Virus record (IMG/VR): IMGVR_UViG_3300046559_001153
Coordinates: 1-64,000 of that record
DNA length: 64,000 nt
Strand: one strand, 5' to 3'
In this document: positions 10,948-60,341 of the stretch, piece after piece
Position numbering within the stretch: the first letter of the stretch is position 1
How the letters are laid out: each line of letters begins with the position of its first letter
Made by a program: the position numbers and the translations under genes
Notes under the pieces: generated by a model
The model's input: only the letters and a program-made list of their open reading frames with translations
Told to the model about the DNA's origin: nothing
The model's database searches: none

Positions 10948-12492
10948 ATGCTCGAGTTGCCAGTCTACCCGGCCTCGGACCTCGATCGACCGCAACAACT
11001 AATTGCGGCGATCGGTTCATTTTGGGGCAATGTCTATGACGGCCGAGATTTCGTCGTCGATCTCTTGCAGGGCCGAGCCGCCGTCGTACGCCAAGCCTTC
11101 GCCGATCTGCAGGAAACGGCCAGCAGTCTGAGTCGGCACACGATCCCTGTGTTCCACAAAAAGGACTGGCAGCGGCTCACAATTGTCGCCTCGCAGGTGA
11201 ACAACTCGGTTATTAACCCATTGCTGTACGACGCAGGCGCCGCGTATGACAGCGGACTACAGTACAACGGGGCCCTATCCCGGTCCGACTTCGCATTCGC
11301 CTGTCCATCGCCCCTGAGAAACTGCCACACGATTTTCGACGCCCCCTCGACAGCGACTGTGTCATTGTCGTTGAATATCGACTTCATCCTGGACACGGTT
11401 AACGGCGTCGTCGCCTTCCGCAACAATCCATTCACCGACCCCAGGTTCTCGCCTCAGACCGTATTTGACGGGGCGTCATCAGACCAGACGTTGGACCTGT
11501 GGCTGTTCTCGGGAGATTACGAGACAAACCAGCTCTACCTGCAGTATGGCTCTGTGCTGGGTGTCCAGCTTCCATCCAGCGACGCGTACAAGCAATTGCT
11601 GAATGCCGTGTTCGACGCGATGGTGCAAGGCACAGCCATGCAGCAGATCCAGAGTTTCATGTCGGCCATTACAGGGATCCCTCTGGCGGCAGGGACCGAG
11701 GTTGTGCAGCTCGTGACGCAGGACGCGTCAGGGCGGCTGGTGATTACCGACCAAAACGTCTACCGGTTCGGATTCAGCGCTACGCCACTGGTGACCGTGG
11801 GGCAGACCGTAACCCAAGGACAAGCCCTGACGGACGGTCTGCAGATCTACGAATTGAACCAGGGGAAAATTCCCGCGGGTTTACAGTCGCTGGCTGTAGG
11901 CTCCGGTGTCCTGGCCGAGGGCTATTACCAGGATCTGGTCTTCCAAAACATGACCGTCCCGACAGTAGTGACCACTGACGCCAACGGCTTCACTGAGCTC
12001 CAGTTCCAGATCGGTGGATTCCCCGGGGATGTTACCGCGTTCTGGGATTCTGTGCATGCAGCCGGGCTGGCGGCCGGGCAGACGCTGGCCGATTTACTGG
12101 ATACCCGTCCAGTCAAAGACGGTCAGCCCACGGCCATCGCCCTGCCAACCACGATCAACCCGTTGCAGTTTTTGATCTCGAATGTGCTGAGAAGCAACGC
12201 ATTCGTCGTCATGTTCACCCCGTCGAGCGGGAACAGCAACGCAATCGGGTTCGATAACCTGCGGTTGCTGCATAAGATCCTGCCCCCACAAACGATTATG
12301 TTCGTGGTAATCAAGCTGGCCATGGCAGAAGGGCCCTTATTGCCCACCCAAGCGGCTACCGCATCGGCCCCAGGTATCGTAGAATCACTGGGCAAGTTCC
12401 TCATACCGCCGATTTTGCAGGATACAATCAATCCGACAGTTTTCATCACCGAACGTGCCTTGCCTCGATCCCTGGCTGGGCGGTGCCAGTAA
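10948..12492 (+). CDS. Putative baseplate wedge protein
   Basis: IGSFW N-terminus, YK.LL.AVF...QG, VITDQNVY..VG..V..GQ.L; structural context. Confidence 0.55.
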   Translation: MLELPVYPASDLDRPQQLIAAIGSFWGNVYDGRDFVVDLLQGRAAVVRQAFADLQETASSLSRHTIPVFHKKDWQRLTIVASQVNNSVINPLLYDAGAAYDSGLQYNGALSRSDFAFACPSPLRNCHTIFDAPSTATVSLSLNIDFILDTVNGVVAFRNNPFTDPRFSPQTVFDGASSDQTLDLWLFSGDYETNQLYLQYGSVLGVQLPSSDAYKQLLNAVFDAMVQGTAMQQIQSFMSAITGIPLAAGTEVVQLVTQDASGRLVITDQNVYRFGFSATPLVTVGQTVTQGQALTDGLQIYELNQGKIPAGLQSLAVGSGVLAEGYYQDLVFQNMTVPTVVTTDANGFTELQFQIGGFPGDVTAFWDSVHAAGLAAGQTLADLLDTRPVKDGQPTAIALPTTINPLQFLISNVLRSNAFVVMFTPSSGNSNAIGFDNLRLLHKILPPQTIMFVVIKLAMAEGPLLPTQAATASAPGIVESLGKFLIPPILQDTINPTVFITERALPRSLAGRCQ

Positions 12493-15887: not shown

Positions 15888-17675
15888 ATGGCCGTCGACT
15901 ATCCTGTTAATCCCGTCGCCATGGATCAGGCTCCACTTGGTGGCACGAACTTTCCGTTCGTGGACACCTCGACGGGTCTGGAATTCCTCATTGCCGATCT
16001 CAACCTGACTTACTCTGACGACGCGTCTGTCTTCGCTTTACCGTTCCGACTCGACTGGCTGCACGGCTTCGGCTCGATGCCCCACTCGGCACCGAGTTTC
16101 GCGCCGACGCCTACCCACGCTCAGGATGTCTTAATCCGTGACGCCAACGAGCAGGTAGTATTCAGCTCTGCTACTGGCAGCTTCAACGTGACAGTCTGGA
16201 ATTCCAGCCTGACTGTTCTGACCTGGAAAACAGCGATGGGGGTTTTGTCGCTCGTCTGGGTTACACAATGGCCCAGCGGACCGACGGCCCCGAACTATTT
16301 CACGAATATCGCCTTCACAAACGTCAAACTTGATTTGCGTACCTGCCAGCGTCTGCCGCCGCATGTTACGGGCATCAAAATCGGCAGCACGGTCTACACA
16401 GGCCAGATTCAGCTGGCGGCCGGGTATAACATCAATCTCGAAAAGGTTGAACAAACGGGCTTTGATAGCGGTATCCAGAATGTGACGGCCCTGCAGATTG
16501 ATGCCGTTCCAGGCGCGGGCCTGGGTCAATTTTCAGACTGCACAGAGGCCAATGTCGTACTACGCAGGGTTAATGGCCAGAGCCCTGACAGCAATGGGAA
16601 TCTGCAGTTGGATCTCGCCGGCTGTTATCGATTGCAACTGGCCGGAGCCATAACGTCGACCAGCCCGCGTGTGTTCAAAACGACACTCGGAACGTTGCAA
16701 TTCAGCAACGACTGCGCCCCATGCTGCGATTGCCAGGACTACGTCAACACCTATCGAGGCCTGACGAACGTTTGGAACCAGTTCTACCAGATAGACGTGG
16801 ACGCTCACCAGGCAAGAGACCAGTTGCAGGCAAACATCGCGAGATGGGATTCACAAAAATCCTGTCGTGAGGCAACAGCGGTTCGTTTGTTAATGGTCCC
16901 GTTCTGTCCATGCCTGATCGGTGTGGTCGGATCGTACTGCAATATGACTGGGACCTGCCTGACAAATGTGACAATGACGTTCAACTTTTCCGGGCTGACC
17001 GAGCTGTCGCCGGACGTGATCTGTGGCCAGACTGTGATCAATAACGATCAGCAGTACGCATTGGCCGGGTCGTGGCCTCAGTATACGGCTTACTTCGACA
17101 ACGTCAGCGCTGGACAACGAGTTTCGGTTCAATTTGCGGTGGAGGCAAAAAACTGTCAGTCGTCTGAGCCGTTGACTGGAACACTCGGTGTTGCGTTCGG
17201 GGCGTCGTCAGCCACACCGCCGCCATCCGCCAGTCAGTCGATCTTGATGCTGGCGCCGGATGGAATCACCGGAGATTGTTGCGATCCCGGCGCAACTTTA
17301 GGGACGTCGTCTACGTCCTCCACGACGTCTAGTACTACTACGACTACCACCACTACCACGACCACAACTACCACCACTACCACGACCACAACTACCACCA
17401 CTACTACGACCACGACCACCACTACTACGACCACGACTACCACCACTACTACGACCACGACCACCACTACTACCACGACTACCACCACTACTACGACCAC
17501 CACTGGCACGTCCGGTACCGGATCGCACGTATGCCAGGCCGTCTGCTCGTGGATGTGGATGGGCGATACATGGTCCTTGCAATCTGGTTGTGAGGTCGGT
17601 TGCGGATGCGCGCCACCTGGAGCTTGTCCGGGCTGCTTTGTCGGCCAATTAGCCGGGTCGGACTGCCACAATTAA
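15888..17675 (+). CDS. Cys-rich tail-associated paralog 2 with poly-Thr stalk
   Basis: NFPF; LAAGYNI; RVNGQSPDSNGNL; CAPCCDC; 57 Thr; Cys/Trp C-terminal module. Confidence 0.65.
   Translation: MAVDYPVNPVAMDQAPLGGTNFPFVDTSTGLEFLIADLNLTYSDDASVFALPFRLDWLHGFGSMPHSAPSFAPTPTHAQDVLIRDANEQVVFSSATGSFNVTVWNSSLTVLTWKTAMGVLSLVWVTQWPSGPTAPNYFTNIAFTNVKLDLRTCQRLPPHVTGIKIGSTVYTGQIQLAAGYNINLEKVEQTGFDSGIQNVTALQIDAVPGAGLGQFSDCTEANVVLRRVNGQSPDSNGNLQLDLAGCYRLQLAGAITSTSPRVFKTTLGTLQFSNDCAPCCDCQDYVNTYRGLTNVWNQFYQIDVDAHQARDQLQANIARWDSQKSCREATAVRLLMVPFCPCLIGVVGSYCNMTGTCLTNVTMTFNFSGLTELSPDVICGQTVINNDQQYALAGSWPQYTAYFDNVSAGQRVSVQFAVEAKNCQSSEPLTGTLGVAFGASSATPPPSASQSILMLAPDGITGDCCDPGATLGTSSTSSTTSSTTTTTTTTTTTTTTTTTTTTTTTTTTTTTTTTTTTTTTTTTTTTTTTTTTTTTTTTTGTSGTGSHVCQAVCSWMWMGDTWSLQSGCEVGCGCAPPGACPGCFVGQLAGSDCHN
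17334..17504 (+). repeat. (ACN)57 tract encoding 57 consecutive threonines
   Basis: 171 nt of mixed ACT/ACC/ACG/ACA codons in frame. Confidence 0.95.
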
Positions 17676-49930: not shown

Positions 49931-50145
49931 AAGTGTATAGAACTAAGCTCAGGCCCAAAAGTGAGAAATAATGGACCCCTCTCGCGTATCTCTGAAGTGA
50001 TAGAAACAAGTTCCCCCTCTGTCACCAGGCTGGTCTATCGAGTACGTCAAAACCAGGCCTTTTTTGACCAAAACGAAGTGATAGAACGAAGTTCCCAAAG
50101 CTGCAAATTTCGGCCTTATTTGATGTGTGATAGAACTAAGTTCCT
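49931..50145. repeat. Four direct repeats, consensus GAAGTGATAGAACTAAGTTCC (iteron-like)
   Basis: Copies at 49931, 49994, 50075, 50125; GC hairpin 49871-49909 upstream. Confidence 0.75.
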
Positions 50146-51087: not shown

Positions 51088-51099
51088 TTGGGAGAAAAA

Positions 51100-51492
51100 A
51101 TGGACAAAGCCTTCGTTACAGGCAGCCAGGCGTACGGGATGCCGCGGCCAGTGACCCGCTGGGAGAAGAATCCGTCTGATCTGGACCTGGTGGTTATGGT
51201 CAGTCGCAGCGACTTGAAGACCATCTTGGACTTTTATGAAGCGACCGGCGTCGGGCCCCCGGGCAGCTGGGAGCCTGGGAGAACCGGCGAGCCTGCACAG
51301 GCCAGCTTGCGGTTCGGCATGTTGAACCTTATCGTCTGCACTCGAGAAGAAGATTACGAAATGTGGCAGACGGGAACTGCGGCTTTGAAGGATAAAAAGC
51401 CGGTCACCCGTGATTTTGCCGTGGCCATGTTCGACAAGATAAAGCAGAAGATGAAAGCCTGGCAATTGTTTCCAGAGGAGTCACTGTCGTGA
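51100..51492 (+). CDS. Pol-beta-type nucleotidyltransferase-like protein
   Basis: FVTGS.AYG...SDLDLVV. Confidence 0.65.
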   Translation: MDKAFVTGSQAYGMPRPVTRWEKNPSDLDLVVMVSRSDLKTILDFYEATGVGPPGSWEPGRTGEPAQASLRFGMLNLIVCTREEDYEMWQTGTAALKDKKPVTRDFAVAMFDKIKQKMKAWQLFPEESLS

Positions 51493-51659
51493 TATTGCAG
51501 CAACAAGCGTTGGCCAATCTGTCTGAATTTTTGGAGCGTCTTCCCACGAAGACAGAGGCCCTGGTCCTGTTTACGACTGACATCTCCCTGGAAGACTGGC
51601 GAGAGACCAAGCGCTGGCTTGAAAAGGCAGCAACCGCAGAAGGAGTTCGATGTGAATGA
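51489..51659 (+). CDS. 56-aa hypothetical protein (not in ORF track)
   Basis: GAGGAG SD, GTGA overlap. Confidence 0.5.
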   Translation: MILQQQALANLSEFLERLPTKTEALVLFTTDISLEDWRETKRWLEKAATAEGVRCE

Positions 51660-52107
51660 AATCACCGTTTTGACGTGGGGAATTTTCGATTTGATTCATC
51701 CTGGCCATATGCGACTGCTTCGTAAGGCCCGCTGGTACGGCACTCGACTGGTTGTCGGGATCAACTCGGATGACTCTGTGCAGACGATCAGGATGTCAGA
51801 CAACCGGCCCGTTATGAACGAGTTGGAGCGGGCCTATGTGCTGCGGCACGTTGTCGGTGTTGACGAGGTGCGAATCTTTGATGCACCGAACGCGGCCGAT
51901 CTGATCTATTCTGTCCGTCCACGGTTTGCTGTTAAAGGCGGCAGCATTCCCGTGTCTGAAGAATTGGCTCTCAGCGACGTGCATGCCAAGTTCATTTATC
52001 TGCCCCCTTTGCCATCCCATCCGCATACTACCGAGCTCATCGGGCGAGCTTACGAGATTTACTGTGACGAACAAGGAATACCATGCCACCAAAGAAAGTT
52101 GCGTTGA
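51652..52107 (+). CDS. HxGH nucleotidyltransferase (RfaE/HldE domain II-like)
   Basis: GIFDLIHPGH, LVVGINSD.SV, RPV..E.ER, VD.V.IF, VKGG. Confidence 0.85.
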   Translation: MNEITVLTWGIFDLIHPGHMRLLRKARWYGTRLVVGINSDDSVQTIRMSDNRPVMNELERAYVLRHVVGVDEVRIFDAPNAADLIYSVRPRFAVKGGSIPVSEELALSDVHAKFIYLPPLPSHPHTTELIGRAYEIYCDEQGIPCHQRKLR

Positions 52108-53213
52108 TTTTTGCCGACTCTCATTTGGCTCAGGGCGCCTGGGTCAGCCGGGAGCCGATCAAGGGGGACAGCTACTTCGGATTTGAACAGATCATCGAGT
52201 TGGCCCTGGAACACAAAGTTCCTCTCATCGGTGCCGGCGATTTGATCGACACCAAACGGCCTGACCCTCGGACGATTGACGTCCTGCGTGTGGGATGTCA
52301 GAAACTGAAAGACGCTGAAATCCCGTTTCACTACATCATGGGCCAGCATGACCTGACGGATCCGCCGTGGTTCTCAGCTGTGCACGACTGGCCTCAGTTG
52401 ATCGAGCCGGACACATCGTTTATGAGCGGCTCTGTCGCTTTTGGAGGATTCTCCTGGCTGCCGTCTGACCAGGTTAATGGCCAGTTGGCCAAGATGATAA
52501 ATGTCGATGTGTTGATTCTCCATGAGGTCTGGGAAGAGTTCATGGGCGGCGGCCAGATCATTTGTGACGGCAGCCTGGTCCACACACCTGAGTCGGTCAA
52601 AGCTGTTTTCACCGGTGATTACCACAGGCACATGAAGAAGCAGGTGACTGGCGTAAAAGGAAATTCATTCCCAGTCTACTCGCCCGGCAGCACATGTCTG
52701 CAGTCGATCGATGAACCGCGGGAGAAGTCTGTTTACCTGCTGTACGCCGACATGTCAGTTAGACCACTTCCCTTGCTGTGTCGTCCGGCGATGACGATTA
52801 CAACGCCGATTGTCAGTGAAGCCGGGTTGGATGAATTCTGCGATACGATCAAGAGGCGAGCGGATACGATCAAACATGATGCGATGAACGACAAGGTCCC
52901 ATCGCATTTGTGCGAACCGTTGATCTACGTCGAGTACGCTCCGGACGTCACGAACATCGTGACCAGGCTTCGCAAGGCTGTGCCGTCGGTGGCCCACTTG
53001 TTCATGAAGCCTGTGTTCCGGGAATCAGAAGAACGGACTGCGCGTAAGGTAACTCGTGCCAAGGTGCTCAATAGCGGCCTGGACGGCGCGGTTGCCTCGC
53101 TGACTGTGGACGACGCCGGGCTCCGCGGAATGTGTCAGCAATTGTTGCTGGCCGACAATCCGGTGATCGAACTGCAAGCACTCAAGGAAACATTCTTTAA
53201 GAAAGGCGCGTGA
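52083..53213 (+). CDS. sbcD: SbcD/Mre11-like nuclease
   Basis: ADSHL, AGDLID, GQHD, LHE, GDYH, PGS. Confidence 0.85.
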   Translation: MPPKKVALIFADSHLAQGAWVSREPIKGDSYFGFEQIIELALEHKVPLIGAGDLIDTKRPDPRTIDVLRVGCQKLKDAEIPFHYIMGQHDLTDPPWFSAVHDWPQLIEPDTSFMSGSVAFGGFSWLPSDQVNGQLAKMINVDVLILHEVWEEFMGGGQIICDGSLVHTPESVKAVFTGDYHRHMKKQVTGVKGNSFPVYSPGSTCLQSIDEPREKSVYLLYADMSVRPLPLLCRPAMTITTPIVSEAGLDEFCDTIKRRADTIKHDAMNDKVPSHLCEPLIYVEYAPDVTNIVTRLRKAVPSVAHLFMKPVFRESEERTARKVTRAKVLNSGLDGAVASLTVDDAGLRGMCQQLLLADNPVIELQALKETFFKKGA

Positions 53214-53843: not shown

Positions 53844-55994
53844 ATGCTACTTAAGCGTTTGACACTTCGTAACATTGGCGTTCACCAGAAATTGGACATT
53901 ACGTTCAAGCCGGGGTTGGTTGGCATCTTCGGTGCCAACGGGGCCGGCAAGTCGACAATCACTAACTCTGCTTACGCTTGCCTGACTAATGACTTCTCCA
54001 GGTTTCCAGGTACTCGAGATCAAATTATCAATGATCAGTCCCAACCCGGCGATCTGGCAGAGATCGCTTGTGATCTGGATATCGATGGTGTCGAGTACTC
54101 ACTGAAACGTGAGCTCGGCCGTAGCAAGTGTCGCATGGAATTTACTCGCCCCGGGCAGCCGCGGCAGCGAATCGACAAAGACGGAGAATTCCAGCAAGCC
54201 CTCTTCAGCGCTTTGGGATTTCCGAGAGATGTGCTCGACAACTTCGTGTTCATCGACCAGTGGGAGACGTTCGCCTTTCTCAAAGCGACACCGGCCAAAC
54301 GAATGATGGCCTTTCACGGGTTGTGCAATACGGGCAAGGCTGAGCGGATCTGGGACGCGGTTGGTCAACGGATTGCCGCCGATGCCAGTCTTGTGGCTGA
54401 CGTACAGGACAACCTGGCTGAGTTTCGTAAACAGAAGGACGACACGGCGGCCGAGTATGTGAGACAACACACGGCGCTCGCCAGCATGTTGCAGGTCGGG
54501 CCTGTGGTTTTGGCTGATCTCCAGCAGAAGGTTAATGATCTGACGGCGTTGGCTAACCTGCGAGAGAATCTGCGTGAGGCTGAGGAAGCTTTGGCCAGTG
54601 CAGCTGCCTCTTCTCTGGCGGCTGCCACCAAATTGTTGCCGGTCAAGAAGGAGCGTGACCGGTTGCAGTCGGCTGTGGATGCAATCGACACGTCGACAGC
54701 TGAGAAGTGCGTGCCCATTCTGCAGGAGTACATCCTGCAGCAGCGGCAGGTCGCCGAGGACAAGCAGCAGATCGATGAGCTGGCTGAGTTCCTGGCTGAC
54801 ATGGCCCAGGAGCCTGAGCTGGAGCTGCCGGAAGGAATCACGTACGAGCCGATGGAAGAGATCAACAAGCGGTTGATCCTGAACAAGGCCGAACTGGCGA
54901 CGGCCAAGGCCTATGTGAAGAATTTCACAAAATCACCCAAGTGTCCCACCTGCGGTCAGGATGCGACTATGCTACTGGCTAAATACCAGAAGACTGTCGA
55001 CGAGTTGCCAGAGCAGATCCAGCAGGACGAAGAGACGGTCGAATGCATCGCTGATTTCAACGCTGACGTGGTCGTTTTCAGACAACAGGTGTCGGATGCC
55101 CAAGCTAAACTGGGCGCGTTGCGCACGCGTTTGGATAACGCAACGCTCGTCGTTCTAGACGATCCGCACTGGGTGACGGAACCGTTGGCCGCCCTCGAGG
55201 ATTTCAAGCTCACGATCGCCAGACGCAAGTTGGCTGAGGTTGCTCTGGCGACGTATGTCAAGTTGACGCTCACTCCAGCAGAGGCTAAGGCCAACGTGGC
55301 TAAGGGGGCTGTAGCTCCGGCAGAGAAACGCGTGGTTAAACTGACGGCCGATTTGCTCATCTACGGCGAAGCCAGTGCTGACGATTTGCCCGCGGTCAAA
55401 GAGGCATTGGCCACAGCAGTCGCCGCCAATAACAGATACACGACTGCTCATGCGTTGGCCAAAGCTGCCAAAACGACAGCTGAAAACGCTGCAGCGGCGT
55501 ACAAGCGGGCTAAGCAGTCCCTCGAGGATGCCCGCCAGCGTTCCCGGGTGGCCCGCTTGTGGCTTGAGCGGCTGGAAAAGGTCCGAGAGGTCTTTCACAG
55601 AGACGGAGCTCCCAAGCTGGTCGCCCAGAGCCGTCTGGAGAGCCTTGAGGACGATATCAACTTGTTCCTTGAGCCATTCGGCAGCCCGTTCACGGTCAGG
55701 GCGGGCGAGGATTTCAACTTGCTGGCTCAAGTCCCCGGGCACTCTGAACGAGAAGCCACCTGGCTTAGCGGGGGACAAAAGGTCGTCCTGTCGATGGCCT
55801 TCTTGCTGTCACAAAGCCCCGGCATGCTGGTGCTTGATGAGCCTGGCGCAGGCCTGGACACCGCGAACAGGGCCTACCTGCGTACGGCCTTGCAGCATTT
55901 CCAGTCAGTTGCGAAAAGTCGCGGGTTGCAGATCATCATGATCACTCATGACGAAAGCATGGAGAGCTCGTTCAACCAGGTCATTCAGTTGTAA
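53844..55994 (+). CDS. sbcC: SbcC/Rad50-like ATPase
   Basis: GANGAGKST, Q-loop, CPTCG zinc hook, LSGGQ, LVLDEP..GLD, ITHD. Confidence 0.92.
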   Translation: MLLKRLTLRNIGVHQKLDITFKPGLVGIFGANGAGKSTITNSAYACLTNDFSRFPGTRDQIINDQSQPGDLAEIACDLDIDGVEYSLKRELGRSKCRMEFTRPGQPRQRIDKDGEFQQALFSALGFPRDVLDNFVFIDQWETFAFLKATPAKRMMAFHGLCNTGKAERIWDAVGQRIAADASLVADVQDNLAEFRKQKDDTAAEYVRQHTALASMLQVGPVVLADLQQKVNDLTALANLRENLREAEEALASAAASSLAAATKLLPVKKERDRLQSAVDAIDTSTAEKCVPILQEYILQQRQVAEDKQQIDELAEFLADMAQEPELELPEGITYEPMEEINKRLILNKAELATAKAYVKNFTKSPKCPTCGQDATMLLAKYQKTVDELPEQIQQDEETVECIADFNADVVVFRQQVSDAQAKLGALRTRLDNATLVVLDDPHWVTEPLAALEDFKLTIARRKLAEVALATYVKLTLTPAEAKANVAKGAVAPAEKRVVKLTADLLIYGEASADDLPAVKEALATAVAANNRYTTAHALAKAAKTTAENAAAAYKRAKQSLEDARQRSRVARLWLERLEKVREVFHRDGAPKLVAQSRLESLEDDINLFLEPFGSPFTVRAGEDFNLLAQVPGHSEREATWLSGGQKVVLSMAFLLSQSPGMLVLDEPGAGLDTANRAYLRTALQHFQSVAKSRGLQIIMITHDESMESSFNQVIQL

Positions 55995-56009
55995 CTTATC
56001 AAAAAGATA
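55992..56009. promoter_or_regulatory. Palindrome copy 7 (TAACTTATCAAAAAGATA)
   Basis: Overlaps sbcC stop. Confidence 0.5.
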
Positions 56010-56050
56010 AAGGAGGTCCCATTTACGTTCACACGGATCCGACGGGCGTT

Positions 56051-56950
56051 GTGGCTTACAGGGAGAAGTCCACAACGCCCGTCATTTCATCTGAGCTGAA
56101 AGTTGCCCGGTTCGTGGCAGAGCTGTCTGCCAGGGCGCCGTGCGAATACCGCGTGCTCGGCATGACGAGCAACGCGTCGCTGATTTGTCGCCTGGCTACG
56201 GCCGGTTACCGGGTGCGTGTCGGCACTCCGGGAGTCTGTCCCACAGGCGACGCGAGAAAACGACCAGAACTGGCTTTGCAGTGTGCTCTGTCAGTGGCCG
56301 GCCCGGCCAGCATCGGCGGCTGGCACCCGGTTGTCGATCACGATCTTCGAACTTACGAATTGATTTGCTCGATGCAGTGGTGTCGATCGCACGGCGGGCT
56401 TCGACCGACACGCTCGTTGGAGCGGCTGTTGCGTCGACATCCGGCCTGGTCAGCTTTGTCGTTTCCGACAACCGGTACTCTGACTGGCCGCGCTCGAGTT
56501 ATTGAGGCGCTTGTTGATCCGCGGTGGTATGTCGATCCGGCAAGAATGAATTCGGTGGCCAAGCTGCATTCGTATATGGGCTTGCACCCCGATCCGATAT
56601 TGTTGCTGTTGGGTTTCCCCGGCGCAAAATTCAAACCGACTGCGGCGTTTATGGACCGAGCATCGGCTGTGCTGGCTGCTTGGGGAGCCCATGGCCGACG
56701 TCCTGACGATTTGTCACAAATGAAAGACCCGCGTCATTTTCTGTGGAGAATCTATTCCGACTCGGCGGTTCCGCATCGCTGTCTGCGTGCGGCTCGCCGG
56801 TTCATAACGTTTGTCAACCAGGTCTGGCTGGACGCTATCACAAAAACGAGCGGCGACGGGATGCTCGACTTGAAACAGATGCTCAGGCGGGACTGCGACG
56901 TAGCTGCCTACAAAAACTATCTGGAAAGGAATGACTATGCCGGGAGATGA
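56051..56950 (+). CDS. Divergent IS110/Nop-domain-like protein (possible ATT start at 56021)
   Basis: L..HPAW..L, LVDPRWY..SVAKLHSYMGL.P, C-terminal H..LRA.RRFI.FV..VW. Confidence 0.5.
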   Translation: MAYREKSTTPVISSELKVARFVAELSARAPCEYRVLGMTSNASLICRLATAGYRVRVGTPGVCPTGDARKRPELALQCALSVAGPASIGGWHPVVDHDLRTYELICSMQWCRSHGGLRPTRSLERLLRRHPAWSALSFPTTGTLTGRARVIEALVDPRWYVDPARMNSVAKLHSYMGLHPDPILLLLGFPGAKFKPTAAFMDRASAVLAAWGAHGRRPDDLSQMKDPRHFLWRIYSDSAVPHRCLRAARRFITFVNQVWLDAITKTSGDGMLDLKQMLRRDCDVAAYKNYLERNDYAGR

Positions 56951-57188
56951 CGACTACGACGACTGGCCGAATGACGAAGACCGCGTGCCATCGATCGGCC
57001 ATCAGAATCTGGCCGCGTCTGTGATGCGGCTAGAATCGTCCTACCGCGATCTGGTTCACTTTACAGGCGGGATTATCGCTACACTGGCGATTGAACGAAA
57101 CCAGTCTGAATTTGCCAAGATTCCCGTGTTCCACGAGATGGCTAAGAAATGGGTGGAACGGTACCGGATTCAATTTAACGGGAGGTGA
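56931..57188 (+). CDS. Small hypothetical protein
   Basis: Acidic N-terminus; overlaps upstream stop. Confidence 0.55.
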   Translation: MTMPGDDDYDDWPNDEDRVPSIGHQNLAASVMRLESSYRDLVHFTGGIIATLAIERNQSEFAKIPVFHEMAKKWVERYRIQFNGR

Positions 57189-57190
57189 CC

Positions 57191-57355
57191 GTGGGCGCCG
57201 CGCGACACTTGAGTGATTTGGCTGATATTTGTGGGTTAACTAAAGAGGATTTTCTGGATTTGTGTATCGAGTACATTGACCGCCAGAAAGACGACGACGC
57301 TTTCCACGATTTTGTGCAGCAACAAACAGTGGCCTGGCTGGACGAAGAATCCTGA
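57191..57355 (+). CDS. 54-aa acidic protein (not in ORF track)
   Basis: GGAGGT SD, GTG start, TGATG coupling. Confidence 0.6.
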   Translation: MGAARHLSDLADICGLTKEDFLDLCIEYIDRQKDDDAFHDFVQQQTVAWLDEES

Positions 57356-57834
57356 TGAGAGAATTGACGATCACGATCCGCTTCTCACAGCCCAGTCTGG
57401 GAAACGTAAAACAGCCTGACGGGAGTTTTGCCTTTCCTCGAGGAGCTACACCGGTAGACGTGCTGTTTTTCGCCAGCTGGTGGAAAGCGTTGATTTGTTT
57501 TGCGGCTGATGCCGTTGGCAAACGCCAGGACGCCGTTCGCGAGATCCTCTGGGATCCTCGAATTGTCGGGGCACCTAAGACGGGCCCTCGTTATGGGTAC
57601 CGTCGTCGCCGCGGTGAACGGTTCATTGTGCATGAGCAGTTTGCTGTGGGCGACACTCTGTCTGTGCATTGCCTGGTTCCGACAGAGATTACTGACCCTG
57701 ATCTGCTTGAGTTGATGACAACGGCCGGAGCATACCGAGGCATTAGTCCGTTTCAGCCCGGCATTTTCGGACAGTTCGTTGTCGATAGAATCGAGAAAAA
57801 GGCCGGATTATCAAATCCGGCTGATTCAGCTTGA
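57355..57834 (+). CDS. Stand-alone RAMP/Cas7-like protein
   Basis: N-terminal strand TIRFSQPSLG, helix SWWKALI, HE.F.VG strand, L.ELM..AG.YRGISPF.PG.FG.F.V Gly-rich loop. Confidence 0.5.
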   Translation: MRELTITIRFSQPSLGNVKQPDGSFAFPRGATPVDVLFFASWWKALICFAADAVGKRQDAVREILWDPRIVGAPKTGPRYGYRRRRGERFIVHEQFAVGDTLSVHCLVPTEITDPDLLELMTTAGAYRGISPFQPGIFGQFVVDRIEKKAGLSNPADSA

Positions 57835-57883
57835 CCGCCATTCGCGGAAAGTTAAACTTGCCTCCCCCCATCAAGGAGTTCTC

Positions 57884-58225
57884 GTGGACTGGCTTATTGC
57901 CCACCTAATCGGTGACTATCTGATTCAAAACGATTGGATGGCGAGAAATAAAAAGACCAGCACAAGCCTGTGTCTGATTCATGTCATCTCGTACACGCTC
58001 GTAATGGCCTGTTTTACGCTGTGGCCGCCGACAGCTTTGTTGATCGTGGCAGTCACCCATTTTGCACAGGATCGAACTCAATTCGTCGCCTGGTACATGC
58101 GTGTGATGGGCCAGACTGAGTTCGCCAAACCACCACTGGCGCCGTGGTCGTGCATCATAGTCGACAACGTGCTCCACCTGGTGGTTCTTTATTGCATTTC
58201 GATTTCCCCGTTGGTACGCCCATGA
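57884..58225 (+). CDS. DUF3307 membrane protein
   Basis: AHLIGDYLIQNDWMA..K, H...YT, THF..D, DN.LH. Confidence 0.8.
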   Translation: MDWLIAHLIGDYLIQNDWMARNKKTSTSLCLIHVISYTLVMACFTLWPPTALLIVAVTHFAQDRTQFVAWYMRVMGQTEFAKPPLAPWSCIIVDNVLHLVVLYCISISPLVRP

Positions 58226-59673
58226 AAATCAATGTTTTGCGCCGTGGTCAGTGGATAGTGATCGACCCGACGACCCCGGAAATTCTGACTGTGTTGGATA
58301 AAGCGTTGACGTACACAAAGCGAGAGTTCCTCTACGGTCTCGACCGTAAGCGGGCTCTGGCTGATGGTCGACCGCCGCTTCAGCTTGTAGATCTCGCTTG
58401 TTACACGCTCGATCACAAACAACGGGTGGCATGCGCCTACGGTTTCTACCCTCGCATTCGAAAGTTGTTGCGCGAGCTGGGGCACGAGGTGAATCTGAGT
58501 AATCTGGCCCCGCACCCGCATCCAGAGATCTTCGAACCGGACTGGAGCAACGTGCTCTCGTTCACAGAACTGCGATACCGACAACAGGAATTTCTTGAGC
58601 TGCTGATCAATAAAGATCAAGGACGATTCGACTGTCCACCCGGGTTTGGCAAGACAATGTTGATCGCCCTGGCTGCCCGGCTGTTTCCGAAAGCCAAGAT
58701 CGATATCACGGCCGTGTCCGCGGATGTTTGCCGCAACATCTGTAGCGAGCTCGAAACGGCGTTGCCGAATGTTGGCTTGATTGGTGGCGGCAAAAAGCAA
58801 AAGGGTCACCGGGTGACTGTGTACGTGGCCAAGTCGTTGTGTCACAGCCCGGCGGATGCGGATATTCTTTTTGGCGACGAATGTCACCAGCTTCCGTGTG
58901 ACAGCTACATCGAGCATTTGACCCGATACCGCTACGCCAGGAAGTACGGCATGTCGGCCACACACGACATGCGATTGGACGGCCAGGACATGCGGGTTGA
59001 ATCGGTTTTCGGCCCGATCATCATGCAGCTGTCCTACCAGGAAGGCGAGGAGAACAAACTGGTTGTGCCTATCCGAGTCGAGTGGACAGACGTCGAAATG
59101 GATTACGACCCGTGCGCCGGAATGGACCAGGTTGAGAAGCTCCGACACGGAATCTGGCGAAACGATTATCGCAACTCGTTGATAGCGGCTGATGCTCGAC
59201 AACACCGGGCAGACGAACAAGTGCTGATCGTTGTTAACACGATCGATCACGCTGTCCATTTGAAACAGGTGTTGCCCGAGTTTACGTTGGTTTACGCGGA
59301 GAACGGCTTGGACGCCATTCATCGTCGCCGGTATACGAAGTGGGGGCTCATTCCGGAGAATGAGCCGTTGATGACCCTCGAGCGTCGCAGTAAGTTGCGG
59401 GTTAAATTTGAATCAGGTGAGTTGAAGAAAGTCATCGCGACCGGTGTGTGGTCGACGGGCGTTGACTTTCGTCAGTTGGAAGTCCTGATTCGAGCCGACG
59501 CCAGCGGTAGTCCGACGCTCGACACTCAGCTTCCTGGCCGTATCTCCAGGTTAAGCGCCGAGACCGGCAAGAACTGCGGGATCTTGCGAGACTACCGCGA
59601 TCAGTTCAACAAGACGTTTGCGCAGCGGGCCAAACGTCGTGAAGCCAATTATGCGGCTAATGGATGGGAGTAA
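58222..59673 (+). CDS. SF2 DNA helicase (UvsW/XPB-like)
   Basis: LRYRQ, PPGFGKT, DECH, MSAT, TGVD, Q.PGR.SR. Confidence 0.88.
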   Translation: MKINVLRRGQWIVIDPTTPEILTVLDKALTYTKREFLYGLDRKRALADGRPPLQLVDLACYTLDHKQRVACAYGFYPRIRKLLRELGHEVNLSNLAPHPHPEIFEPDWSNVLSFTELRYRQQEFLELLINKDQGRFDCPPGFGKTMLIALAARLFPKAKIDITAVSADVCRNICSELETALPNVGLIGGGKKQKGHRVTVYVAKSLCHSPADADILFGDECHQLPCDSYIEHLTRYRYARKYGMSATHDMRLDGQDMRVESVFGPIIMQLSYQEGEENKLVVPIRVEWTDVEMDYDPCAGMDQVEKLRHGIWRNDYRNSLIAADARQHRADEQVLIVVNTIDHAVHLKQVLPEFTLVYAENGLDAIHRRRYTKWGLIPENEPLMTLERRSKLRVKFESGELKKVIATGVWSTGVDFRQLEVLIRADASGSPTLDTQLPGRISRLSAETGKNCGILRDYRDQFNKTFAQRAKRREANYAANGWE

Positions 59674-59675
59674 GT

Positions 59676-60341
59676 ATGCCACTGGTTAATGCGAGATTGG
59701 TGGAATTGACCGCCGGTGTCGTCCGTGCCACGTACATTCAAGAACGCAGTCTGATTGACGGTAAATCGTACATCCCGTCGGTTAAGTGGGATGGTAATGG
59801 GCACGGTAGATCGGCTGATTCGATCTGGCAGAAGATCGCACAGAAGCTGTTGCTTTACGGAGTGGAGCCTGGCAATTTTGTTCGACATTATTTCGAGCGT
59901 ATCGCCGTGGTTGGCGGAAACCGGATAGCGTATTACCCGACTGATCTTTTGAATGAGAGCCTGATCAAGGCATATCGCGATGACTGGCGTCCTATCGCGA
60001 TTGCTGATCTGCGTGACTCGTTCAATTTTCAGACGAACATAGCGAGAATCGCCTTCCTGACGTATCAGGGTCTGCGAAAGGTTGACGCTATCGAGGCGAC
60101 CAAGGCCGTACTGTGGGATCTCGATGTGGAGCTGACGCCCCTGTTTCGTTTCTGTTGGGCTGTCAGTATGAAACGAAAATCGTTTCGCAAGATTCGCGAC
60201 AACTATCTCTTATTGGCCGCGATCCAATACAGCAGCGACAGCGAGTGTTACGACGAGGTTTGGGGAGACCGGATTCCCCAGTCTTTTAAGACCTATGTAA
60301 TCAAGACTCTCGGTTTAGCGTGCAAAGGACGAAAGTTATGA
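59676..60341 (+). CDS. Hypothetical replication-region protein
   Basis: KWDG, LTPLFRFC, Y...W motifs; between helicases. Confidence 0.65.
   Translation: MPLVNARLVELTAGVVRATYIQERSLIDGKSYIPSVKWDGNGHGRSADSIWQKIAQKLLLYGVEPGNFVRHYFERIAVVGGNRIAYYPTDLLNESLIKAYRDDWRPIAIADLRDSFNFQTNIARIAFLTYQGLRKVDAIEATKAVLWDLDVELTPLFRFCWAVSMKRKSFRKIRDNYLLLAAIQYSSDSECYDEVWGDRIPQSFKTYVIKTLGLACKGRKL

Follow-up and report, generated by a model that had tools for sequence, protein, structure and literature searches.

A TasR-like, IS110-related Nop-domain protein in the replication and recombination block of a jumbo phage

The domain with which IS110 transposases bind RNA, the Tas proteins of the TIGR-Tas systems and the Nop5 and Nop56/58 proteins share the Nop fold, and Tas proteins have been reported mainly in phages (Faure et al. 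2025, PMC12045711). In Nop5 and Nop56/58, the Nop domain is joined to an inactive RuvC-like N-terminus that recruits fibrillarin (Faure et al. 2025, PMC12045711). The searched text of a preprint describes TasR proteins with a catalytically dead RuvC domain as RNA-guided DNA binders and repressors; it also reports a compact, arrayless TasR branch in dense viral genomes and leaves the source of its guide open (bioRxiv 10.64898/2026.09.09.750476). Here we describe a gene whose product is related to these proteins. It lies in a 64,000-nt stretch of DNA (the window), which is the first 64 kb of the IMG/VR record IMGVR_UViG_3300046559_001153, a complete viral genome of 224,270 bp with 127-bp direct terminal repeats and a G+C content of 55.5%. 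The protein, referred to as TasR-like, has a RuvC-like N-terminal domain, where an H/D-N-H-D set, conserved in part, stands in place of the catalytic DEDD tetrad. Profile comparison shows its C-terminal helical domain to be a homologue of the Tnp domain, the Nop-like domain that binds the guide RNA in IS110 bridge recombinases. The gene and the parts of its product, with residues counted from the ATT codon at 56021, are as follows.

56021..56950, + strand: TasR-like / IS110-related gene, 309 codons from ATT 56021 with the stop codon at 56948-56950; gene callers start it at GTG 56051 (299 aa)
56021..56395, + strand: N-terminal RNase H/RuvC-like domain, residues 1 to ~125, predicted order of elements b1-b2-b3-a-b4-a-b5-a (AlphaFold2, AF2), non-canonical site H4, D6, N51, H102, D108
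56408..56941, + strand: C-terminal helical Nop-like / IS110 Tnp-like domain, residues ~130-307, from hhalign and the TasH match
56438-56590, + strand: core motifs HPAW..LSF, DPRWY and YMGLHP, within the C-terminal domain

The kinship to IS110 could be traced at the level of sequence profiles. Four peptides had been quoted in an earlier reading of this DNA (the original prediction), namely HPAWSAL, which begins at residue 140, ARVIEALVDPRWY (residues 158-170), SVAKLHSYMGLHP (residues 178-190) and HRCLRAARRFITFVNQVW (residues 252-269). All of them are in the frame of the open reading frame (ORF) 56051..56950. We aligned 142 family sequences (alignment A2, mean pairwise identity ~30%) and compared them by hhalign with 25 diverse IS110 transposases (mean identity 26%; locus L027 from the unpublished genome G141 was left out, and none of our claims depends on unpublished genomes), which gave a probability of 93.7% (E 2e-7). 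Residues 130-309 matched the IS110 Tnp domain (Transposase_20) with 95.1% (E 3e-8) and residues 130-215 with 94.3%, while the N-terminal 135 residues gave no significant match to the IS110 DEDD domain (PF01548, P 0.12). The paired motifs are HPAW..LSF with iPGvG, DPRWY with GD..RF, and YLGL.P with yaGL.P of IS110. With the Pfam model Transposase_20 (PF02371) itself, a faint signal was obtained in 2 of the 142 members, the best E being 0.028.

The fold searches point in the same direction. The AF2 model made with A2 is predicted with high confidence (predicted local distance difference test, pLDDT, 93.6; predicted template modelling score, pTM, 0.92), and its top Foldseek match in the PDB is TIGR-TasR (9mty, probability 0.96). 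VIA-align superposed the model on TasR with Z 10.4 over 231 residues, the next match reaching 5.2. A Foldseek-independent scan of 48,161 PDB chains again placed TasR at rank 1 (Z 10.2, residues 1-301), followed by TasH (Z 7.8, residues 109-301) and the IS110 recombinase ISCro4 (Z 7.0, residues 1-288); after these came YqgF, RuvX, RuvC and MOC1 at Z 5-6, which cover residues 1-97 only. Searches of the AlphaFold DB clusters and the ESM Atlas returned IS110 transposases, in the AlphaFold DB with a probability of 0.99-1.0. On the model, then, the closest solved structure is that of TIGR-TasR, and a Tas-type Nop-domain fold is predicted to be present on the strength of structure, not of Tas sequence profiles. 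The original prediction had claimed a kinship to the Nop-like region common to IS110 and TIGR-Tas proteins. Since the fold searches agree (ranks TasR, TasH, ISCro4), with hhalign at 94-95%, and the Nop fold is common to these groups (Faure et al. 2025), this structural claim was correct. In the comparison with IS110, Tas and Nop5 structures that it had proposed, TasR and an IS110 recombinase were matched, but the 50 rows listed in the PDB fold searches include no chain of Nop5.

TIGR-TasR (TaTasR, PDB 9MTY; Faure et al. 2025, PMC12045711) belongs to the same size class of ~300 aa as the phage protein and likewise joins a RuvC-like domain at the N-terminus to a Nop-type helical domain behind it; both occur in phages. 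Over the two domains together it gave the best structural match (Z 10.2-10.4, 231-235 residues). However, the two proteins are only 11-12% identical, and the relationship is undetectable by HMMER, with which the TasR-like family profile found zero matches in the PDB. The phage family also differs in lacking four conserved acidic RuvC residues, an evident coiled-coil element and an array in this genome, and whereas TIGR-TasR is a stand-alone locus of array plus gene, the phage family occupies a fixed slot in a replication module. The dead TasR proteins PateTasR and CsTasR share the architecture of a dead RuvC domain and a Nop domain with the phage protein, but they carry stem-loop arrays, and none was found in this phage. 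The description of the divergent arrayless TasR branch fits this phage family, which is probably that branch, the match being one of description against the searched text of the preprint (bioRxiv 10.64898/2026.09.09.750476); that text makes no mention of SbcC or jumbo phages.

The IS110 bridge recombinases (IS621; ISCro4, PDB 9T56) have in common with the phage protein the homologous Tnp sequence and an N-terminal RuvC-like domain. They differ from it in possessing the DEDD tetrad, the catalytic Ser (SG) and ~50-100 residues between the RuvC and Tnp parts that the phage protein lacks. IS110 elements furthermore have a non-coding flank for the bridge RNA and insertion sequence (IS) ends, whereas the phage gene has neither and is present in one syntenic copy. 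Nop5 and Nop56/58 offer a precedent for a dead RuvC domain that serves as adaptor to a neighbouring enzyme, but they guide RNA modification rather than DNA metabolism, and the phage protein has no known fibrillarin or L7Ae partner.

The family is large. A profile of four sequences (the window protein and three relatives), searched against 1.84 billion representatives, detected 955 clusters (50% identity) at E<=1e-3 and 489 at <=1e-30. Among the 150 clusters listed, nearly all are ~300-350 aa long and most match nearly the whole profile. Family members share 25-33% identity. Three residues (D166, W221 and W269) are invariant in A2, and ~23 further positions are conserved to >=90%. The family motifs are L.LH.D..G.VW, LG...NA.LI, GGWH.....DY..Y, HPAW.ALSF, DPRWY, YLGL.P, FLWR and LRASQ.F..FLR..WL, of which the most strongly conserved (DPRWY, HPAW, GL.P) fall in the Nop-like domain. 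The number of clusters, the near full length of those listed and the many conserved positions at ~30% identity indicate purifying selection. Related contigs that reach full size are viral genomes of 190-230 kb, and the clade comes from soil, rhizosphere, freshwater and marine metagenomes. The protein had zero matches in Pfam, PHROGs and PADLOC, no match in BFVD and none by tblastn in 50,697 GenBank phages; a search of a protein-language-model atlas returned noise only.

In four other IMG/VR viral contigs (L215-L218), a match was confined to a stretch of ~50 residues centred on DPRWY (29% identity). These may represent more distant Nop/IS110-like relatives.

We next consider the putative active site. 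RuvC-equivalent positions were assigned from the fold topology, and conservation was read from the columns of the 142 sequences. H4 is conserved in 82%, but D6 in only 56% (Ala in 23%), so that the first catalytic Asp is missing in 44% of the members. At the place where the topology predicts the catalytic Glu there is an Asn (N51), conserved in 95%; H102 is conserved in 91% and D/E108 in 97%. The original prediction had noted that the protein has no clear DEDD tetrad and no catalytic SG motif, and both statements hold for the family as a whole: no conserved Ser follows GL.P, positions 191-212 are all unconserved, and the IS110 SG columns face variable residues in the hhalign alignment. With D6 in 56% and Asn in place of Glu, canonical two-metal RuvC chemistry is not a conserved property of the family. 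The retention of N51, H102 and D/E108 implies, on the other hand, that the site is not free to drift, and a non-canonical catalytic or nucleic-acid-contact role is possible.

The start of the gene is unusual. The elements in question are:

56010..56017, + strand: Shine-Dalgarno sequence AAGGAGGT, 3 nt 5' of ATT 56021, read directly
56041..56083, + strand: perfect 14-bp hairpin with a 15-nt loop, 20 nt past the ATT; 56041-56054 pairs with 56070-56083 (100% complementary)

The ATT at 56021-56023 is in frame with the ORF 56051..56950. The nearest upstream in-frame stop is at 55949-55951, the frame is open from 55952, and between this stop and GTG 56051 there is not a single in-frame ATG, GTG or TTG. 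A non-canonical start at the ATT behind AAGGAGGT had been suggested in the original prediction, and comparison with relatives supports it. Three relatives from a word-indexed search all begin M-x(3-5)-LR[LV]H..G.VW. The N-terminus of relatives follows the pattern M-(~8 aa)-[LI]K/R-L-H-T-D..G.VW, and its first strand lines up with IYVHTDPTGVVAY, a stretch encoded 5' of GTG 56051. In most of 24 related viral loci, an ATG (GTG in L040) lies ~9 codons before [IL]K-L-H-T; a codon of this kind is missing from the window. In the AF2 model, beta-strand 1 of the N-terminal sheet is made up of residues 2-5. The 8-mer AAGGAGGT occurs four times on the + strand of the 224-kb genome and not at all on the - strand; the other three copies are followed by ATG or GTG after 4-5 nt, here by ATT after 3 nt. 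A spacing of 3 nt is among the shortest that are usual. GTG 56051 lacks a Shine-Dalgarno sequence and sits within the 5' arm of the hairpin. Because homologues align upstream of the GTG, AAGGAGGT precedes the ATT and the GTG is buried in the hairpin, ATT 56021 is very probably the start, as judged from sequence, with a product of 309 aa. The lesson for annotation is that automatic callers shorten the TasR-like protein by ten residues.

The 120-nt region around the hairpin folds at -43.3 kcal/mol (z -3.07). We saw no comparable hairpin at the same position in relatives, and the idea of a family-level RNA element was dropped since the hairpin is not conserved among them. As a feature of this phage, the hairpin at 56041-56083 may tune initiation at the weak ATT start.

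The ORF is not an assembly artefact, since positions 55948-56347 are letter-identical in contigs of four independent soil or rhizosphere metagenome assemblies and the window sequence is present in at least 20 DNA runs. Nor is the gene an insertion sequence. It is present in one copy in the 224-kb genome, in which PF02371 is absent elsewhere, and no flanking inverted or terminal repeats of the IS-end type were found at the gene. Here too the original prediction was accurate in reporting no IS ends and tight packing after sbcC: the sbcC stop at 55994 is followed after a 26 nt gap by the start of the TasR-like gene, whose 3' end is overlapped by the downstream ORF. One copy, no terminal repeats, tight packing and fixed gene order together mark it out as a core gene of jumbo phages that is single-copy and syntenic within their replication/recombination block. 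The coding strand of the genome is strongly biased, with 245 of 258 genes on one strand (crude ORF caller). The block runs SbcD, SbcC, TasR-like gene, Cas7-like RAMP, XPB-like helicase, DnaB, PolA; the neighbours nearest to the TasR-like gene are listed here.

52083..53213, + strand: SbcD/Mre11-like phosphoesterase (Pfam Metallophos), syntenic in relatives
53844..55994, + strand: SbcC/Rad50-like ATPase (Pfam SMC_N, AAA_23; PHROG 77, SbcC-like)
56931..57355, + strand: two small inserted ORFs of 85 aa and 56 aa, peculiar to this phage, which separate the TasR-like gene from the RAMP gene; the second has a good Shine-Dalgarno sequence
57355..57834, + strand: minimal Cas7/Csm3-like RAMP protein, 159 aa, from alignment A3, AF2, Foldseek and VIA
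58222..59673, + strand: XPB-like SF2 helicase (ResIII + Helicase_C), open from 58144 (Pfam, PHROG 16), syntenic

SbcC is encoded directly 5' of the TasR-like gene in 33 of 33 related loci with upstream sequence, often with overlapping stop and start codons. The order in relatives is SbcD-(x)-SbcC upstream and, downstream, the SF2 helicase, a ~225-260-aa protein, DnaB, a ~350-380-aa protein and a PolA-UDG fusion. A RAMP-type gene for a protein of ~160-190 aa follows within ~10-60 nt 3' of the TasR-like gene in 22 of 25 loci; here it is displaced by the two small ORFs, which have zero family matches. Apparent gaps of 400-700 bp in related loci turned out to be coding, an artefact of the crude ORF caller.

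The RAMP protein escaped detection by sequence models including Pfam and PADLOC, and its assignment comes from structure. Its AF2 model (pLDDT 91.1) matched 77 PDB chains in Foldseek at E<=1e-3, and all 50 of the 50 rows listed are RAMP-type (type VII Cas7, Csm3, Cmr4, Csf2, Cas7-11). VIA gave Z scores of 12.0 (Cmr), 11.7 (Csm) and 10.7 (Csm3), with ~145 of the 159 residues aligned. Conserved motifs are RF..LG, HEAF.PGD and G.Y.G.SP......G.F.V, and A3 shows a conserved loop G125..G129-S-P..G139. The gene at 57355-57834 is therefore predicted to encode a Cas7-family RAMP with an RRM/ferredoxin-like core and the glycine-rich loop, in the form of a single RRM. Both the TasR-like and the RAMP protein are basic (pI 9.8 and 9.1). 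For the helicase, the nearest solved structure is archaeal XPBII (E 1e-8), and there are weak matches to the Cas3 and PbeA defence models. A Cas7-fold RAMP next to an SF2 helicase echoes the Cas7-plus-helicase logic of nuclease-free type IV interference among the type IV/III CRISPR effectors. In contrast to these, no CRISPR array, Cas5, Cas6, Cas8 or Cas10 was detected, the phage RAMP is a minimal single RRM, and the helicase is XPB-like. An assignment of the 225-aa protein (59664-60341) as Cas5 was rejected, as 1 of 10 members matched.

Some further features of the neighbourhood were observed. A 148-aa ORF (57779-58225) overlaps both the RAMP gene, at its 3' end, and the helicase ORF, at its start; by eye its product resembles a small membrane protein, and it bears a DUF3307-like H..GD..Q..W motif. 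In the 226-kb relative L190, the place of the RAMP gene is taken by a 329-nt non-coding gap (11036-11364). On the minus strand this gap has a strong hairpin with a T-run behind it and could give rise to a small antisense transcript; L039 also has no RAMP gene at that position. Ahead of SbcD there is a cytidylyltransferase-like ORF (51619-52107), and relatives carry CTP_transf_like genes at the same place. Three loci (L038:4088-4288, L189:3705-3920, L190:5506-5682) have, just 5' of SbcD, a CsrA-like gene that is encoded on the opposite strand, together with a PfkB-cytidylyltransferase fusion. A 134-aa ORF (51088-51492) has a GS...(x)...DLDLVV signature that, by eye, suggests a minimal Pol-beta-type nucleotidyltransferase. 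Further upstream, at 49932-50144, the motif GTGATAGAAnnAAGTTCC with its GAAC-N3-GTTC palindrome is present in three exact-pattern copies and a fourth, degenerate one. The copies sit in a 390-bp non-coding region just 5' of the replication block, and the motif is absent from the rest of the 224-kb genome; the cluster looks like an iteron or operator.

What might the TasR-like protein do? We tentatively favour, with a probability of roughly 45%, that it is an RNA-binding, probably RNA-guided, nuclease-inactive DNA-recognition module, whose partners in the DNA metabolism of the phage would be the helicase and SbcCD. The module would be formed by the TasR-like protein together with the adjacent RAMP. 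It would not perform canonical RuvC cleavage and would resemble a dead TasR, which binds and unwinds a DNA site specified by RNA; the recognised site would then pass to the adjacent helicase and/or to the SbcCD nuclease while phage DNA is being replicated or recombined. The RNA would not be a recognisable TIGR array in this genome and would come from elsewhere or have another form. The conserved Cas7-like RAMP neighbour and an array in one related locus, L038, lend circumstantial support. The original prediction had spoken of a domesticated RNA-guided binder with its guide encoded elsewhere. The structural and evolutionary kinship behind this idea stands, but an origin as a domesticated IS110 is not established, and the search of the 224-kb genome yielded neither a guide nor an array; the protein may just as well be a divergent TasR without an array.

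The array of L038 deserves description. This locus, that of P0020 (JGI 3300076146, contig Ga0620837_000036), carries at L038:11293-11547 a canonical dual-repeat TIGR array of 7 units with a period of 35, co-oriented with the cassette. In it, GTGAGAACCA alternates with GTGAATCCA, with 8-nt variable stretches between them, i.e. CCA-N9-TG. The array starts at the helicase stop codon (TAACCA...) and ends at the contig edge. TasR-type box C/D motifs and a truncated first repeat are known for TIGR arrays, and the L038 array fits both (Faure et al. 2025, PMC12045711). A lookup of the L038 helicase protein, made to extend the contig, returned the same contig only. The array-repeat pattern had 0 matches across IMG/VR, and a looser pattern was discarded after yielding 120 single chance matches only in metagenome contigs.

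Several observations weigh against RNA guidance. The search for TIGR-like arrays in the genome, which the original prediction had proposed, found none in 224 kb: a dual-repeat array is absent by autocorrelation (periods 18-90 nt), which picks only coding repeats (at 17.3, 69.3, 107.9, 124.2, 141.7, 191.1 and 198.0 kb), and stem-loop tigRNA-like units are not enriched in a TIGRFinder-like genome scan (2 matches vs 0-3 in shuffles). Rfam had zero matches in the window, and a look-up of sequencing runs listed none of RNA. L038 is the only one of ~45 distinct related phage loci, with 6-10-kb flanks, that has an array, and as this array reaches the end of its contig, it may go with a tas gene that lies beyond. 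In the AF2 model, no long two-helix coiled-coil hairpin is predicted between the domains, and a prediction of the homodimer reached 0.25 where 0.42 was the mark, which gives no answer; canonical Tas proteins work as coiled-coil C2 dimers. The conserved N51, H102 and D/E108 could belong to a site for non-canonical catalysis or for DNA binding in which RNA plays no part. Finally, guide-dependent systems of the defence type seldom show such strict core synteny among replication genes.

As for other repeats and RNA genes, the window holds no tRNAs, and Tandem Repeats Finder and a direct-repeat search of the window detected coding low-complexity repeats only. A long imperfect ACC/ACG-rich tandem repeat lies at 17293-17538 (periods 21, 24 and 45) within a 595-aa ORF (15888-17675); it is a Thr-rich coding sequence of low complexity. 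Similar coding repeats lie at 107.9, 124.2, 191.1 and 198.0 kb.

It is conceivable, if rather unlikely, that the protein is a DNA-structure factor that works without RNA: the RuvC-like fold (N51/H102/D108) and the helical domain would recognise or resolve branched DNA, hairpins or ends. It would then be an accessory of SbcCD and the helicase, as a resolvase- or Nbs1-type partner, with its Nop-like domain exapted for binding DNA or protein. The invariable slot after SbcC, often with overlapping stop and start, and the core replication-module synteny would suit such a factor. So would the resemblance of the N-terminal domain to the Holliday-junction resolvases RuvC, MOC1 and RuvX/YqgF (Z 5-6), the 91-97% conservation of residues at RuvC-type catalytic places even though the first Asp is not conserved, and the failure to find a guide RNA. 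Yet that first Asp is absent in 44% of the family and an Asn occupies the expected Glu position; moreover, the whole-protein match is to RNA-guided proteins and not to resolvases, the conserved RAMP neighbour has an RNA-binding fold, and the top conserved motifs (DPRWY, HPAW, GL.P) belong to the Nop-like domain. At the other end stands a more ambitious form of RNA guidance, in which the TasR-like protein, the RAMP and the XPB-like helicase would make up a previously undescribed RNA-guided housekeeping machine for jumbo-phage replication and recombination. Its guides would not be arrays, and the L038 array would be a relic of, or a link to, canonical TIGR-Tas. Such a machine might open R-loops at RNA-specified sites for origin firing or helicase loading, or direct SbcCD to defined sites. 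We consider this version doubtful and hold it to be unlikely.

Bona fide inter-element competition or (counter-)defence of the TIGR-Tas type appears quite improbable to us. Here the arrays would be distant, inside coding sequence, or too divergent or short to be recognised, and the location among replication genes would be incidental. The array of L038 is of the canonical TasR type (UG...CCA boxes, 9-nt spacers, truncated first repeat), intragenic tigRNAs are known, and Tas proteins occur mainly in phages (Faure et al.). However, two detection modes found no arrays in the complete 224-kb genome, the related loci apart from L038 have none either, the RuvC catalytic residues are lost, and accessory defence genes are rarely so strictly syntenic across members that are 25-33% identical. 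That the gene is a decaying, functionless IS110 remnant, or that the protein truly starts at GTG 56051 without the first strand, is barely credible. The sequence kinship to the IS110 Tnp domain could be read in favour of a remnant, and gene callers did pick the GTG (cluster P0001 is 299 aa). But a remnant does not agree with 955 clusters and conserved positions that speak for purifying selection, with fixed synteny and a confident fold, or with the lack of IS ends and extra copies. A start at the GTG, which has no Shine-Dalgarno sequence and is buried in the 14-bp stem, would remove the conserved first beta-strand.

What is new here is the context, previously unreported, in which an arrayless TasR/IS110-related Nop protein is found together with a Cas7-like RAMP, an XPB-like helicase, SbcCD and the replication module; a literature search for Tas-like proteins or TIGR-Tas linked with RAMP or SbcCD found no paper. 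The known RNA-guided systems with a Nop domain (IS110, TIGR-Tas and box C/D snoRNPs) each have an obvious guide gene, whereas this family keeps the architecture without the nuclease residues or an array. If the protein is not RNA-guided, it would be a clear exaptation of a guide-RNA-binding fold. If, as we tentatively favour, it is RNA-guided, RNA guidance would serve the virus's own DNA metabolism rather than defence or mobility, and the hallmark folds of two guide systems, Nop and RAMP, would be joined in one module. It would then also answer the question that the 2026 preprint left open, namely what guides the arrayless TasR proteins.

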